A DNA stretch of 64,000 bases, from sequence record MT028491.1; one strand, 5' to 3'. Shown here piece after piece: positions 10,388-34,036 of this stretch. How positions within the stretch are numbered: the stretch's first letter is position 1; every line of letters begins with the position of its first letter. Position numbers and translations under genes: made by a program. The notes beneath the pieces were generated by a model. It searched no databases. It was not told where the DNA came from and saw only the letters and a program-made list of their open reading frames with translations.

Positions 10388-10858
10388 TCAAATATTCCCA
10401 TCTATAGTAAATTTTGCACGAATAGCGACTTCTCCGACGCCACAAATTTCAGCAATTTTAGATATGTCTTCATATCCTAATTTTCGGACATACATGTCAA
10501 AAGTCTTTTCTGGAATGAGAAGACTTAAGGCAAAGACATTGGCTTGCCATTCTTCGAATGATGGATTGTTGGCCATATATGCACTAGCATCCTCAATAAT
10601 GGGTAGAGGATGATGTAAAGTGATATGACCTAACATGTGTGCCATTGCATAGCGTTTGCGTCTTGCAGAGTGGTTTCTGTTGATTTCAACGGTAGTCGAA
10701 TCTAGAATGCTATCGCGATCAGCTAGAGTGACGGTAATACCCATACGTTGATATAGTTTCTCCATATCAACGGGTAAAATTCCATCGGTAAAATTCCCAA
10801 AAATCAATTCAGGAATTGTTTTAATTGTGTCTTCGGTTGTCAGTTTTTTGTAATCCAT
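10388..10858 (-). CDS. ImmA/IrrE (M78)-like protein with altered HExxH motif
   Basis: RKRYAMAHMLGHITLH ... EEWQANVFALSLLIP. Confidence 0.75.
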   Translation of the reverse strand: MDYKKLTTEDTIKTIPELIFGNFTDGILPVDMEKLYQRMGITVTLADRDSILDSTTVEINRNHSARRKRYAMAHMLGHITLHHPLPIIEDASAYMANNPSFEEWQANVFALSLLIPEKTFDMYVRKLGYEDISKIAEICGVGEVAIRAKFTIDGNI

Positions 10859-11001
10859 TATTTGGCAACCTTATATTAAAAAATACCCCCGCTTATTTGC
10901 ATAATATATGAGTGGGTAACTCTATTTATCATGATAAATTGAAACACCCTCAAAAAATAATTAAAAATGGGGAAAGTTTAAAACTAACCCCATTTCCAAC
11001 T

Positions 11002-11328: not shown

Positions 11329-11658
11329 TTAGTTGAGATTAGTCAATACGTCTTGATAAATTTTTTGACTAATAATTCGATCAGCACTTTCTACAGCACT
11401 TCGAACTGTGTCTTCTTCAATATTTCCACCTAGTTCTGAAATATCGAAATTCAGTATAACGTCCTTATCATAAATCTTAAGATCGTCTACATTATACCCA
11501 AAGCGATCCAGCGTTGTGACAATCTTACCCTTGCTTGTATCTTCATCGATAACAACAACCACATTTCCTACATAGCTGGCGTCACCAAAACCAAGATGAA
11601 TATTTCCAAGTGGAAGGGCATATCGGTTGTAGGTCTTTGTGTTATTCCATTCAATCAT
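11329..11658 (-). CDS. hypothetical protein
   Basis: 109-aa ORF. Confidence 0.6.
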   Translation of the reverse strand: MIEWNNTKTYNRYALPLGNIHLGFGDASYVGNVVVVIDEDTSKGKIVTTLDRFGYNVDDLKIYDKDVILNFDISELGGNIEEDTVRSAVESADRIISQKIYQDVLTNLN

Positions 11659-11739
11659 TTAAGTTATTCTTGCTCCATTCTTCACGTCATATGACGCTTA
11701 TGCATTGTTTGTGATTTAACTCTATATTAGGTTTTTATG

Positions 11740-14177: not shown

Positions 14178-14510
14178 TCATATCTTCCCAAATACCTCTT
14201 GATGTGCTGTTGTATAAAGATGTGGAGATTCATACCTTCCTGACAAAACAAATGCCAATTCATCATATTCATAATCGTCACCATTCACATTGAAATAAAA
14301 CTGAATTTGTCTTTGGAGAAAACTTTCCAGACATCCAATAGCATGTAAGAATGTCAGATAATCGTAATTTTCAGGAATTTCAAATATGATGTTATTAATC
14401 AATTGATGTTCAACATCATATGTAAAAGAAAGACGACTGTTCCTTTCAAATCTCGATTCTACTAAATCAAAGGATGGAGTTGATTGTGTCGTGTTGACAT
14501 TTCGTGACAT
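14178..14510 (-). CDS. hypothetical protein
   Basis: 110-aa ORF. Confidence 0.55.
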   Translation of the reverse strand: MSRNVNTTQSTPSFDLVESRFERNSRLSFTYDVEHQLINNIIFEIPENYDYLTFLHAIGCLESFLQRQIQFYFNVNGDDYEYDELAFVLSGRYESPHLYTTAHQEVFGKI

Positions 14511-17077: not shown

Positions 17078-17099
17078 TTAGATAATGTTTTGACACGAT

Positions 17100-17172
17100 T
17101 GACAACAACAGGGATCGAACCCATACATATCGTTTATCATACGACCGTTCTACCACATTAAACTATATCATC
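17100..17172 (-). pseudogene. degenerate tRNA-Ile(GAT)-like element inside a 22-bp inverted repeat
   Basis: D-like TAGTTTAATGTGGTAGAAC, anticodon arm GTCGT-ATGATAA-ACGAT, GGGTTCGATCCC T-arm; G:U-rich acceptor; no CCA. Confidence 0.6.
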
Positions 17173-17194
17173 AATCGTGGCAAAACATTATCAG

Positions 17195-22558: not shown

Positions 22559-24277
22559 TTACATTGCATCAATTTCAGCATATGTTGGTATGGGTTTATA
22601 AACTACATCATCTGTTGTTCCGATACCGGCATTCAAATTTGCAGCATCGGAACCGGCTACCGTTGTAAAATCTCCATTGGCCATATCTGTAATACATGAT
22701 GGACCATAATCGACACAAATGTTATCATTAAATAGATAACCGTATGAAGGTTCTGCTAAAGCGGCTGGATAGTTGCCTTTCCAAACTCCACCAATATCAT
22801 AATCGTAATTGTCAGTACCACCCCAATAGTTTTCAGGAGTCCACATATTAGCGGCTGAATTTGGTGTACGAATACCGGCACAATCTCTATCATAAGCATA
22901 GAAAATATTGTTTTGAAGTTGAATACCACGACCAGAATCAAGCATTCTCAAGAAATAGTTAAATCCGTTTGGAGCATTTTTGTCCAAAAGCAAAGCACTA
23001 TTTTGAACTATACATTTCCCGCCATCAGATACATCATAAATCATCGCATGGTTTGTAGGATGTTTAACGTATATTCTTAGTCGTTGAATAATCGCATCTT
23101 CTGAATTTTCTAGATACAAACCCCTAACTATTGAGTGGGTTTCATCAGTAATTTTTGTATCTTGTGCAATAATTTTATCAGACACGGCACTGATAGCGCC
23201 ATAACAATCGTGTATCCAGTTTCGACCAGAAGTCAGGGAAACAACATCTGCAACGGATATTCCTAAATTACAGTTAGCAACCGTACAATCAAAAATATCA
23301 ATTTCATCCCACTTGGCCGAGGCACCACTTGTATGAGCATAAAAACCTGTAACACCTACGTTATTATCGTATGCCCATTGGGATTTATCAGCTTCGGCAA
23401 TTGCCAAGCAATTGTAGAACGATACCTTTTGACCTATACCATCTTGCGTATGTCCAACAAATAATGTTGCATTGGTACGTCTTGGAAGATCGTGTTTATA
23501 GGCAATACATTCAAATGCAGTGGCATTTCTTCCAATGTAAGAGTTGTGCTTTACACCATCCTCAAAAATGCAGAAATTAGCTTGAGAACCATTGCCAATG
23601 ATGGTTGAGCCATTGTTATGAAGTTGTCTCTTAGTACGAATACGAGAAATTTTACAATTATCACCAAGATTAACACCATAATGACGACTTGCATATTCAT
23701 ACAATGCATTATTCGTGTTTGGATCGATATCAGAATAGATATAGAATCGAGCAAGATATGTTGGGTTTGTCGAAGCTTCTGCTACAAAATAATGATCATT
23801 TGTTGTCAGATTACCGGTATTTGATACCCATTCCATACGAACACCATTCTTCCAAAGGGAATTATACATGGTGTATTGACTGTCAATAGTCGTTATATCT
23901 GCATACCAAATGTTTCCGGTATCATTTGTCCAAACTCCATCAAAGACATCAGCCGCATCAAAGGTAGGCAATTTATCTTCCGGGTTTCCATAAACATCAA
24001 TTTCAATACCTGTATAGGTATCAACTATAATCTGTTCGCGGAAATACGAACCATATTTTACACCAACCTTTATGTTATTTTCCCAAGTGATAGCCGAAAT
24101 AGTTTTCAAAGCTGTTGCTTCTGTCAAACCATCATTAGAATCACTACCATCAACACTATCGACATAAATGTCAAAGAGTGGTGTAGGATCGATATTGTCA
24201 ATGACTTCATTAGGCCATGCAGCACCTAATGTTGTGTTTGGGATTGGGTAATTAAAAACCTTTGTGATATCACTCAT
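22559..24277 (-). CDS. pectin-lyase-like parallel beta-helix protein, possible virion depolymerase
   Basis: YVDSVDGSDSNDGLTEATALKTI motif, N/D/G/I-rich repeats; late promoter upstream. Confidence 0.7.
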   Translation of the reverse strand: MSDITKVFNYPIPNTTLGAAWPNEVIDNIDPTPLFDIYVDSVDGSDSNDGLTEATALKTISAITWENNIKVGVKYGSYFREQIIVDTYTGIEIDVYGNPEDKLPTFDAADVFDGVWTNDTGNIWYADITTIDSQYTMYNSLWKNGVRMEWVSNTGNLTTNDHYFVAEASTNPTYLARFYIYSDIDPNTNNALYEYASRHYGVNLGDNCKISRIRTKRQLHNNGSTIIGNGSQANFCIFEDGVKHNSYIGRNATAFECIAYKHDLPRRTNATLFVGHTQDGIGQKVSFYNCLAIAEADKSQWAYDNNVGVTGFYAHTSGASAKWDEIDIFDCTVANCNLGISVADVVSLTSGRNWIHDCYGAISAVSDKIIAQDTKITDETHSIVRGLYLENSEDAIIQRLRIYVKHPTNHAMIYDVSDGGKCIVQNSALLLDKNAPNGFNYFLRMLDSGRGIQLQNNIFYAYDRDCAGIRTPNSAANMWTPENYWGGTDNYDYDIGGVWKGNYPAALAEPSYGYLFNDNICVDYGPSCITDMANGDFTTVAGSDAANLNAGIGTTDDVVYKPIPTYAEIDAM

Positions 24278-24746: not shown

Positions 24747-24822
24747 TGGTGGGTAATCTTGGTTCTGACCCAAGTTCTTCGGTGCTTCAAACCGACGCAT
24801 TGACCACAGTTGCTTATTACCC
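24747..24822 (-). tRNA. tRNA-Phe(GAA) with atypical T-loop
   Basis: TCGGT-TT-GAA-GC-ACCGA arm; T-loop GTCAGAA; GGGTAAT/ATTACCC, ACCA. Confidence 0.85.
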
Positions 24823-29531: not shown

Positions 29532-29607
29532 TGGCGCATATGACGGGGATCGAACCCGCCTAGACTTGATCGACAGTCAAGCGATTTCACCAGAAATCAA
29601 CATATGC
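29532..29607 (-). tRNA. tRNA-Asp(GTC)
   Basis: CTTGA-CT-GTC-GA-TCAAG arm, G73-CCA. Confidence 0.9.
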
Positions 29608-30744: not shown

Positions 30745-30753
30745 ATCTATAAA

Positions 30754-30948
30754 CTATATACGCCTACTGATCAGAAAAACCGAGCTAGGGATTGCGCCTA
30801 GCACTTCTTCCCATGGCACCCAACATCCCCTATCGGGAATTGAAGGAATCGAACCCTCACAAGGTACTTGCGCTCTTCTACTTAAACTACCGGTCTGGTT
30901 CCAAAGTTAGCTATTCTTCTCACCGTAACGATCAATAGGCATATATAG
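30754..30948 (-). ncRNA. candidate ~195-nt ncRNA with two T-loop-like hairpins
   Basis: 19-bp closing helix with 2 G:U pairs on minus strand; GAGGG-TTCGATT-CCTTC and CTAGG-CGCAATC-CCTAG. Confidence 0.65.
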
Positions 30949-30951
30949 TTT

Positions 30952-32159: not shown

Positions 32160-32559
32160 TAAACTAACTTCCACAGACATCCTTGCTATGTTGTCAACAT
32201 GGCTTTAAACCGGACTCTATCTGTTTGTGTAGATGAAAAACATACCCCTATTCTATAAGGGCATTGGTATAAACATCCCAACTGTTAGCCTACGTGTAAT
32301 GGGGAATGTTGACTAAACATCGCGATCATTACACTCTACTTTATTCTTTTCGATCCATTCAAGGGCATTTGCAACTGCTAACTTGAATTCCATGTTTATC
32401 ATGCGATGCTTGTTGCAATATACTTATTGAACAGAGGCAGGACCGGACATTATTTTAGAGTCGCTACAAAGCGCCTCTTATAATCAGGCGACTTAGTATT
32501 ATAACCCCTAAGTCAAGGGAAGACGTGCGTGTCAATGAAGGGCTGCACATCCTGTCTCA
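32160..32559 (-). ncRNA. candidate ~400-nt structured ncRNA between tRNA-Val and tRNA-fMet
   Basis: ORF-free; several 7-8 bp helices plus long-range GACTCTA/TAGAGTC. Confidence 0.5.
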
Positions 32560-32635
32560 TGGTAGGTGTTGAAGGATTTGAACCTTCGCATGGTGGCATG
32601 TAAAACCACTGCCTTAACCACTTGGCGAAACACCT
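32560..32635 (-). tRNA. tRNA-Val(TAC)
   Basis: GTGGT-TT-TAC-AT-GCCAC arm; D-arm resembles Gln/His type; ACCA. Confidence 0.85.
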
Positions 32636-32642
32636 ATAAATT

Positions 32643-32718
32643 TGGCTGGAAAGGCGGGCTTCGATCCCGCAACCTTCCGGTTAACAGCCGGATGCTCTAC
32701 CAGTTGAGCTACTCTCCA
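32643..32718 (-). tRNA. tRNA-Asn(GTT)
   Basis: TCCGG-CT-GTT-AA-CCGGA arm, G73-CCA. Confidence 0.92.
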
Positions 32719-32929
32719 AAATTCGCTATGGTTTTTGACAATGCCGAACACCACCAAACGGCACCCATATTCGAAGTTAGGCAAACGTATCTGAATGCTT
32801 CACCTTCATGGGTATAGAATTAGGTTGCCAATTTCTTTTACTGTCATTGGCGAGGAAACAGTTGTTAACTTATCTGAAAATCGTGTTCTCTATATATGAT
32901 ATTCCAGAATTGGTCAACTATTTATATTA

Positions 32930-33555
32930 GTTACTAGCACAGTCTCGCGAAGCTTTGACCCTATGTAGTAGATTTGTTTAGTCTTAGTTTAGTCTAGTTT
33001 TGTATAATACTAAAATCAGGATAGCTTTTCGATGTTATGCAAAAACAGTTTTTGGTTGCTGCTTCTATCCTAAAGTTCATTGCGTATTGCAATGATGAAA
33101 CGACTTACCGGAATACCGGTTCCAGCTAGTTACGAGGCTGTTAATCTCGCTTGATTTTGGATAGGATCAAGAATAACCTAACTTTTATTTAATAGAAATG
33201 GGAAATGTTAAACCCACCTTGGCATCCAGCTTCAAAGTCCGAAGACTCCACTGTGTTGCTCTCTCTATGATTTTAATCTTTAGAGTTTGCAGCGTGCATT
33301 CCAATTTCTTAATGTTGGTAACTTCAAATCAATCCGAAGATATTCTTTCCAAAGGCCATCCCATTAAGAAACGCAAGTCGTTTCATCATTGCAATATTTC
33401 AGGAAGCATTTCGGCTTGTTTTTTTCAAATAAAAATGCTTGTTAGGTTTGCTGTTAGCTTCCTAATATTGCCAATTTAATAAAACTACTGGAAACATTTG
33501 AGTGTTTATAACCGAAACTTTTTGAGTTGCTGTTAGTTTCCAAAAACGTTTTATC
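32930..33555 (-). ncRNA. candidate large structured ncRNA / leader of the tRNA operon
   Basis: perfect 22-bp helix 33085-33106/33375-33396 with nested stems; directly downstream of tandem promoters; no credible ORF. Confidence 0.55.
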
Positions 33556-33559
33556 AAAC

Positions 33560-33597
33560 TATTTATATATTCTATTCTCTATTTAGTATAAAGTCAA
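33560..33597 (-). promoter_or_regulatory. tandem sigma70-type and late promoters for the RNA array
   Basis: TTGACT-N17-TAGAAT (33569-33597) followed by TATAAATA (33560-33567). Confidence 0.8.
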
Positions 33598-33856
33598 CAA
33601 CTTTTTTTAACTTTTTACTATTTTTTTTGTTTATTTTTACGGAAAGCATTTTGGTTTGTATTTGGAAACAAATTTTTTATGTTTGCTGTTAGCTTTCCAA
33701 AGCTTGTTAGGTGGACTCCCATCTGCAAAGGGGCATCTTGGGGGGCTTTGATGTTTTGCAGACAGGAGTCCTCACTGATATCTAACCTTTCGGTTATCAA
33801 TCAGCTTGAAAGAAACCTTCAATTTAGAAGAACTCTTTAAAACTGATTATGTTTAG

Positions 33857-33885
33857 ATATTAACTCGATTCGATTTGAAAGTCAA
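33857..33885 (-). promoter_or_regulatory. sigma70-type promoter
   Basis: TTGACT-N17-TAATAT with upstream A-tract. Confidence 0.75.
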
Positions 33886-34036
33886 CATCTTTTTTAGTGA
33901 GAACCGAAAGAATTTTTAGTACCACTCATACTATAGTTCTTCCGGTTCTCTTTGACATGATCATTCGTACATTCTCACGTCAACGCTTACGGTATAGACC
34001 GGACAAAGTGATTCGTCAACTGGTCTTTTTAGAAAA

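Follow-up and report, generated by a model that had tools for sequence, protein, structure and literature searches.

A perfect 22-bp long-range helix upstream of the tRNA cluster of Ochrobactrum phage vB_OspM_OC: a candidate RNase III-type processing stem

Perfect duplexes spanning about two helical turns are canonical substrates of RNase III in bacterial transcripts, and in bacteriophage T4 this enzyme takes part in the processing of transfer RNA (tRNA) precursors. The T4 tRNA cluster also contains species 1 and 2 (rnaC/rnaD), non-tRNA RNAs of unknown function that are co-transcribed with the tRNAs. In bacteria, RNase III releases 16S and 23S ribosomal RNA (rRNA) from the stems that flank them and, in alpha-proteobacteria and others, excises intervening sequences (IVSs) of 100-200 nt; the loops closed by its bacterial substrates can be as short as four or as long as thousands of nucleotides (PMC8708148). 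Here we describe a perfect 22-bp inverted repeat, termed helix H2, in Ochrobactrum phage vB_OspM_OC, a T4-like jumbo phage originating from sewage (PMC7139368), and compare it with these systems. The analysis concerns a 64,000-nt stretch of its 227,654-bp genome (MT028491.1, record positions 124001-188000), hereafter the window, to which all coordinates refer unless stated otherwise.

The 22 nt at 33085-33106, TATTGCAATGATGAAACGACTT, recur as an exact reverse complement at 33375-33396, and 268 nt separate the two arms. Even with up to three mismatches allowed, this 22-mer occurs at these two sites of the window only, and none of 100 shuffles contained any match. When G·U pairs are admitted, H2 comprises 24 of 24 pairs on the minus strand (33396-33373 with 33108-33085) and 24 of 25 on the plus strand, while none of 12 dinucleotide shuffles of the 64-kb window exceeded 21 pairs. 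This perfect inverted repeat is far beyond chance, and the first-pass annotation of this stretch, which had reported a long-range helix enclosing about 270 nt, was right on this point. On the minus strand, the 5' arm spans 33373-33396 (Watson-Crick core 33375-33396, extended inward by one G·U and one C-G pair) and the 3' arm spans 33085-33108 (perfect core 33085-33106, inward extension to 33108). Between them lies a non-coding spacer of 264 nt (33109-33372, minus strand) with structure at chance level. The duplex has the at least 20 bp of uninterrupted double-stranded RNA, about two helical turns, that is a feature of RNase III processing stems.

H2 is situated within about 1.4 kb devoid of credible genes (32719-34135), upstream of tRNA-Asn (32643-32718, minus strand), the first downstream tRNA, which lies 366 nt past the 3' arm. 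This stretch forms the upstream end of a 17-kb region with 22 tRNAs detected by ARAGORN, all on the minus strand, as are the protein genes that flank the region. The minus strand carries the tRNAs, the genes and the promoter motifs alike, and is thus almost certainly the RNA sense strand of the helix region. The first-pass annotation had correctly recognized the tRNA-cluster neighbourhood, but read the plus strand, on which its sequences are written.

The GenBank record places seven open reading frames (ORFs) of 29-93 aa, on mixed strands, in the 1.4-kb stretch. The largest, p285 (93 aa, 33198-33479, plus strand), overruns one helix arm; its codon-usage score is -0.03, compared with 0.28 ± 0.11 for in-frame and -0.13 ± 0.09 for out-of-frame pieces of real genes. 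A Pfam search gave no match to it, and among approximately 15 billion proteins p285 and four of the other small ORFs are singletons. On the grounds of its non-coding codon usage, its strand opposite to that of its neighbours and these two negative searches, p285 was rejected as a coding gene. The helix region is non-coding, and its earlier description as ORF-free stands in practice, given that only short, mixed-strand annotated ORFs occur there. A replication origin was rejected as well, the GC skew showing no switch.

Tandem promoter-like sites upstream of H2 (33560-33597, minus strand) would drive the transcript. They consist of a sigma70-type TTGACT-17-TAGAAT at 33597-33569, with an A-tract upstream, followed by a T4-type late motif, TATAAATA, at 33567-33560; a second copy of the late motif, also on the minus strand, separates the helix-closed unit from tRNA-Asn at 32926-32919. 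Both the tandem pair and the second late promoter had been proposed before, and the motifs are there, as consensus matches. Within the window, TATAAATA is not over-represented (6 copies found vs 6.7 expected). All six copies are intergenic and co-oriented with the downstream gene, and the phage encodes gp55-like and gp33-like late transcription factors; for these reasons the late-promoter reading is reasonable. There are exactly two copies of an early-type motif, AAAAG-N-TGTTGACTT, one at 33605-33591 and one at 33893-33879; elsewhere the minus strand has two near copies. Promoter motifs upstream and tRNAs downstream thus share one orientation, and the minus strand between the promoter motifs and tRNA-Asn contains no terminator-like site. 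No promoter-like site lies within 33107-33374.

We tentatively propose that H2 is an RNase III-type processing stem in a tRNA leader transcript, acting as minus-strand RNA, a reading to which we assign a probability of roughly 0.45. Transcripts would begin at the tandem early- and late-type promoters (33597-33560) and run toward tRNA-Asn and tRNA-Val. The two arms would pair into an uninterrupted duplex of 22-24 bp, approximately two A-form turns, closing the 264-nt loop, and RNase III would cut both strands and thereby excise a spacer RNA of roughly 270-310 nt. The same cut would free the downstream tRNA precursor from an upstream leader that carries repeated hairpins. Observed directly are the helix with its statistics and strand context, its siblings and its analogues in other phages; transcription of the region, helix formation in the cell, cleavage by RNase III and any benefit for tRNA maturation are inferred. 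The enclosed sequence is probably a spacer and not a highly folded functional RNA.

The stems of rRNA operons and of 23S rRNA IVSs resemble H2 in several respects. They too are flanking duplexes of at least about 20 bp that close loops of up to hundreds of nucleotides, in their case within a polycistronic stable-RNA precursor, and rRNA-operon precursors, like the predicted H2 transcript, include tRNAs. In contrast to these stems, H2 encloses a non-coding spacer of a phage tRNA leader and neither an rRNA nor an insertion into an rRNA helix, its duplex is perfect where rRNA stems carry mismatches, and its cleavage is a prediction. The T4 stable RNAs differ from the H2 unit in being 120-140 nt long and compactly folded, whereas the H2 unit measures 312 nt and has an unstructured interior; blastn detected no sequence relation between the H2 region and the T4 RNAs.

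H2 has two siblings in the same genome. An inverted-repeat search, followed by a G·U-aware scan for long-range helices across all 227 kb, returned as the three longest long-range helices 17192-17081 (H1), 33396-33085 (H2) and 30951-30751 (H3), and all three reside in the tRNA cluster. H1 (17081-17192, minus strand) forms 26 of 27 pairs, of which 19 bp prolong, by direct stacking, the acceptor stem of a second, weak tRNA-Ile(GAU), and ends 3 nt ahead of tRNA-Leu. This weak tRNA shares 51 of 79 aligned positions (approximately 65%) with the other tRNA-Ile and has three G·U pairs in its acceptor stem; the stacking of H1 leaves it without a free discriminator base or 3' trailer. H3 (30751-30951) reaches 23 of 23 pairs, three of them G·U, solely as minus-strand RNA; the two positions that fail to form Watson-Crick pairs are G·U there and C·A on the plus strand. 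The gap that separates tRNA-Leu(UAA) from tRNA-Gly(UCC) is filled by this helix, which begins 1 nt past the former, ends 6 nt before the latter and encloses a degenerate tRNA (an 18-bit match to the tRNA model and an ARAGORN match at the 80% threshold) with an intact T-arm, GAGGG-TTCGATT-CCTTC. H2 differs from both in its large non-tRNA interior and in its 366-nt distance from the next tRNA. Interpretation of H1, H2 and H3 as RNase III-type processing stems of tRNA-cluster transcripts is the most economical reading of the three. Elsewhere in the genome, a perfect 20-bp hairpin with a 26-nt loop is found at record positions 23746-23811, in the gap that precedes a baseplate wedge gene; apart from H1, H2, H3 and this hairpin, the genome contains no helix of this length class.

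Since the phage encodes p153, a protein annotated as Ro sixty-related, phages with p153 homologues were examined for similar elements. In the Felix O1-like Escherichia phage HY02, a gene for a Ro-like 'RNA-binding protein' lies directly upstream of the tRNA cluster, and the cluster contains two such elements (10421-10563 and 11615-11712, local coordinates). One is a sense-strand helix of 26 out of 27 pairs (3 G·U) that encloses 89 nt and ends 4 nt before tRNA-Lys; the second is a hairpin of 30 out of 31 pairs adjoining another tRNA. Neither belongs to an Rfam family at the gathering score, the second hairpin giving just a sub-threshold miRNA-precursor match. The tRNA-Lys helix (22-28 bp, approximately 90 nt enclosed, 4-5 nt upstream of the tRNA) is present in six Ounavirinae from three genera, and RNAalifold retains a closing helix of 22-23 pairs in all six. 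Compensatory changes replace CG by UA at alignment columns 8/151 and 16/143 and CG by GC at 23/136, with a further change at 28/131; substitutions break no pair, and unformed cells occur at one indel column only. The T5-like Salmonella phage S116 also carries sense-strand helices of 20-22 bp with interiors of approximately 80 nt in its tRNA cluster (14181-14306 and 10807-10926, local coordinates), one of which overlaps the 5' end of tRNA-His.

Long leader-trailer helices thus recur in the tRNA clusters of phages, and the aligned sequences demonstrate that they are selected in one lineage, the Ounavirinae. Together with H1 and H3, these analogues suggest that the H2 duplex itself serves in processing or as double-stranded RNA. 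Like H2, the Ounavirinae element is a leader-trailer helix on the tRNA sense strand of a phage tRNA cluster; unlike H2, to which it is non-homologous, it has a conserved 89-nt interior and sits 4 nt from its tRNA, compared with 268 nt and 366 nt for H2. In our literature searches, neither the Ounavirinae element nor any other long helix of a phage tRNA cluster was described.

Several observations weigh against a processing role for H2. The helix gives no strand-specific G·U signal, one G·U extension being gained on each strand, and a recent duplication at the DNA level could equally have produced a perfect 22-bp repeat. Its 366-nt separation from the tRNA, unlike the positions of H1, H3 and the Ounavirinae helix, and the promoter motif in between make a role in tRNA maturation less direct. 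Finally, the H2 locus has no relative in the phage, IMG/VR, metagenome or genome collections searched, which leaves no homologous helix for comparison.

Megablast and blastn of 32700-33800 against 50,697 phage records (INPHARED) returned only the source genome, and the exact 22-mer is absent from IMG/VR, from JGI metagenome contigs and from GTDB (one genome per species). A lineage-specific 20-mer of tRNA-Asn, used as an anchor, found nothing in IMG/VR and, in the metagenomes, 20 high-GC cellular contigs without tRNAs, which are irrelevant here; a search with the tail-spike gene likewise gave no IMG/VR relative. The neighbouring gene p290 has no homologue among 5.8 billion proteins, and eight of ten neighbouring ORFs are unmatched in PHROG, where the sole informative match is p291, with homologues in phiKZ-like phages only. 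Ochrobactrum phage ORM_20 has a compact cluster of five tRNAs and no long helices.

The perfection of the repeat, which has neither mismatch nor wobble, is what a young DNA repeat would show, and it raises the alternative that H2 is a DNA-level feature with no RNA function: a recent inverted duplication, a scar or the terminal inverted repeats left by a small mobile element, or an invertible segment. Its position is also insertion-like, seated exactly between two copies of a four-member hairpin repeat described below (hairpins C and D); HNH homing endonuclease genes occur in the tRNA regions of this phage, and the interior is without detectable function. Terminal inverted repeats, as in miniature inverted-repeat transposable elements or insertion sequences, are present. 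Yet the flanks (...cattgcg and tttcagg...) share no direct repeat and thus show no target-site duplication, and the element, absent from all collections searched, is single-copy in the 227-kb genome, for which reason a multi-copy mobile element was rejected. The phage annotation includes no transposase, invertase or integrase, and an inverton was rejected because no invertase or integrase is annotated and because the enclosed segment (33107-33374) lacks any promoter-like site. A retron msr-msd was rejected too, no reverse transcriptase being annotated anywhere in the phage. A DNA-level origin would, moreover, leave the siblings unexplained: the other two long helices belong to the same transcription units, and H3 has G·U pairs restricted to the sense strand. 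The analogous Ounavirinae helix is kept by compensatory change. Even after a DNA event, the transcript would still carry the 22-bp duplex. We consider a purely DNA-level explanation unlikely.

Without the arms, the interior of H2 folds on the minus strand to a minimum free energy (MFE) of -60.0 kcal/mol, compared with -56.2 ± 5.0 kcal/mol for shuffles (z = -0.78), and on the plus strand its z is -0.60; 100-nt sliding windows within the interior give z of about 0 to -0.5 on the minus strand. In contrast, 341 nt that include the arms reach z = -4.4 (minus) and -5.4 (plus), and the entire 626 nt singled out by the first-pass annotation (32930-33555) reach z = -5.4 relative to shuffles. The z-score of the 626 nt derives from the closing helix. 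The lack of significant structure in the interior fits a spacer. The nested stems noted earlier in the interior, namely TTTCTTAATG at 33305-33314 with CATTAAGAAA at 33362-33371, ACCGG..CCGGT, CGAG..CTCG and TTGAT..ATCAA, are indeed present in the sequence and in the MFE folds, but jointly they do no better than chance.

Two features of the interior hint at structure at the RNA level, and they are its sole indications: a perfect 11-bp hairpin stem adjoining the 5' arm of H2, and two cUUCGg tetraloop motifs on the minus strand (33339-33334 and 33244-33239). Between 16.5 and 34 kb, the other three minus-strand copies of cUUCGg all fall within tRNAs. In the window as a whole, CTTCGG occurs 40 times where 14 ± 4 are expected, and most copies are on the plus strand within genes of the minus strand, a placement that suggests a codon or composition effect.

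The first-pass annotation had gone further and inferred a single structured noncoding RNA (ncRNA) of 500-600 nt, possibly of a new class. In this interpretation H2 closes a large, specifically folded ncRNA with a function of its own, either the 312-nt unit or the whole 500-600-nt leader, comparable to GOLLD, ROOL or the T4 stable RNAs. The setting agrees with it, in that the region is ORF-free, lies beside tRNAs and has its own promoter motifs, and so do the z-score of the 626 nt, the two interior cUUCGg motifs and the 11-bp stem by the 5' arm. GOLLD and ROOL are likewise large non-coding stretches beside phage tRNA genes. The H2 region differs from them in giving no covariance-model match at E ≤ 10 and no sign of an intricate conserved fold. 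As proposed in that annotation, cmsearch was run against Rfam, and no family could be assigned even at this permissive level: Rfam 15 at gathering thresholds reports tRNAs only across the whole window, and at E ≤ 10 the interval 32300-34300 yields tRNAs and chance-level matches, with no GOLLD, ROOL, group I or II intron, HEARO or Y RNA. A tRNA or pseudo-tRNA in the H2 interior was rejected, as neither the tRNA model at E ≤ 10 nor ARAGORN at its 80% threshold gives a match.

The 626-nt span is itself a mosaic of separate elements, with two small repeat hairpins, the 312-nt helix-closed unit, a third hairpin copy and another promoter motif at its end, and it has neither a second copy nor a homologue in the collections searched. 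With the interior at shuffle level, the z-score attributable to the closing helix and no Rfam family, a large folded ncRNA closed by H2 is improbable, and the outcome for the claim of a new large ncRNA class is mostly negative.

A further alternative concerns p153 itself. Y RNAs are closed by a stem of their 5' and 3' ends, and phage examples are known (PMC4201824, PMC12135203); for the Bas63 homologue, the use of tRNA-like Y RNAs from the tRNA cluster has been proposed (PMC11482910). H2 could accordingly be imagined to close a Y-RNA-like partner of the Ro60-like phiOC_p153, the stem binding the protein and the ribonucleoprotein serving in RNA quality control or counter-defence. The 467-aa p153 (record 105819-107222) is annotated as Ro sixty-related from the depositors' HHpred search, its homologues occur in 709 phage records, many from tRNA-rich groups, and the Ro-like gene of HY02 is directly upstream of the tRNA cluster. 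Like a Y RNA or YrlA, the H2 unit has paired ends and stands in a genome with a Ro-like protein gene. However, H2 has no bulge and, where its arms read ...AACGACUU... and UAUUGCAAUGAUGAAACGACUU, contains neither the GNCGAA(N0-1)G nor the CGAA motif (motif from PMC4201824). The interior has no T-arm or D-arm module by the same two tRNA searches, and with its 312 nt the unit exceeds known Y RNAs about threefold in length.

The Ro-like gene is on the same strand as H2 but approximately 50 kb away (record 105.8 kb vs 157.1 kb), whereas reported YrlA candidates were required to be at most 4 kb from the Ro gene (PMC4201824). The protein p153 matches DUF2828 and DUF7788 in Pfam but not TROVE, and its sequence matches none of the solved Ro60 structures (PDB chains). 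Similar helices are also present in a T5-like phage, a group that is not prominent among the carriers of Ro-like proteins, as judged from the organism tally of that search and not from the S116 genome directly. Four of the five defining features of a Y RNA are missing, and the fifth, a Ro60 protein, rests on annotation by HHpred with Pfam TROVE negative. We regard a Y-RNA identity as highly improbable.

A broader version of the excision model is that H2 and its siblings represent an undescribed class of RNAs, excised from phage tRNA-cluster transcripts via leader-trailer helices of about 22 bp, in which the released RNAs or the stems are functional. Their partners, or the targets that they decoy, might be the phage Ro-like protein, host ribonucleases or RNA-sensing defences. 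No member would be larger than the 312-nt unit, and the Felix O1-like and T5-like analogues suggest, by analogy, that such a class would be widespread. We consider this functional extension quite unlikely.

Annotations of phage tRNA clusters usually list the tRNAs and treat the rest as junk spacers or tiny hypothetical ORFs. If H1, H2 and H3 are processing stems, they show a phage organizing the maturation of a 17-kb stable-RNA region through the RNase III of its host, and they delimit spacer RNAs that may possibly be functional themselves, as species 1 and 2 of T4 still might be. The Felix O1-like and T5-like phages have tractable Escherichia coli and Salmonella hosts, and the general question is therefore testable there.

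The leader upstream of H2 and its flanks contain four paralogous minus-strand hairpins, each 52-61 nt long, that share the loop motif CTAACAGCAAC while their closing stems vary by compensating changes. In order of transcription, the first spans 33698-33641 (closing stem GGAAAGC/GCTTTCC), hairpin B spans 33490-33541 (GGAAAC ... GTTTCC), hairpin C spans 33402-33462 (GGAAGC ... GCTTCC, loop motif CTAACAGCAAAC) and hairpin D spans 33018-33071 (AGGATAG ... CTATCCT). Each carries CTAACAGCAA(A)C as a conserved 5' loop motif, and ...AAATG precedes the 3' stem strand. Hairpins C and D directly flank the H2 unit, C lying 5 nt ahead of the 5' arm and D beginning 13 nt past the 3' arm. Taken alone, each repeat hairpin folds weakly (z about -1.7). 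MotA-box middle promoters were rejected as an identity for the repeats, since no fitting spacing was apparent by eye and neither MotA nor AsiA is annotated.

Just upstream of the H2 region, structure is far more pronounced. On the minus strand, 33700-34040 folds to -118.9 kcal/mol compared with -69.0 ± 4.5 kcal/mol for shuffles (z = -11.1), and on the plus strand its z is -4.0. The minus strand of 33700-34026 forms an array of seven hairpins, five of them with stems of 9-21 pairs and with 13 G·U pairs in total, located between a tRNA-like sequence (34040-34126) and the H2 region; the early-type motif at 33893-33879 lies within its fourth hairpin. The array has no Rfam match. It is the better candidate for the structured ncRNA of the locus.

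The tRNA-like sequence bordering this array (34040-34126, minus strand) is unannotated and 87 nt long, with a long variable arm and an encoded CCA end. It scores 31.6 bits against the Rfam tRNA model in the E-value scan and is reported by ARAGORN at the 80% threshold only, with an irregular anticodon loop. Two tRNA genes on the minus strand are missing from the GenBank record, at 29535-29607 and 24750-24822 (49.1 and 39.6 bits against the Rfam tRNA model, respectively). According to the genome paper (PMC7139368), the phage lacks tRNAs for some amino acids, including Asp and Phe; at its 90% threshold, ARAGORN identifies these two genes as tRNA-Asp(GTC) and tRNA-Phe(GAA), respectively.

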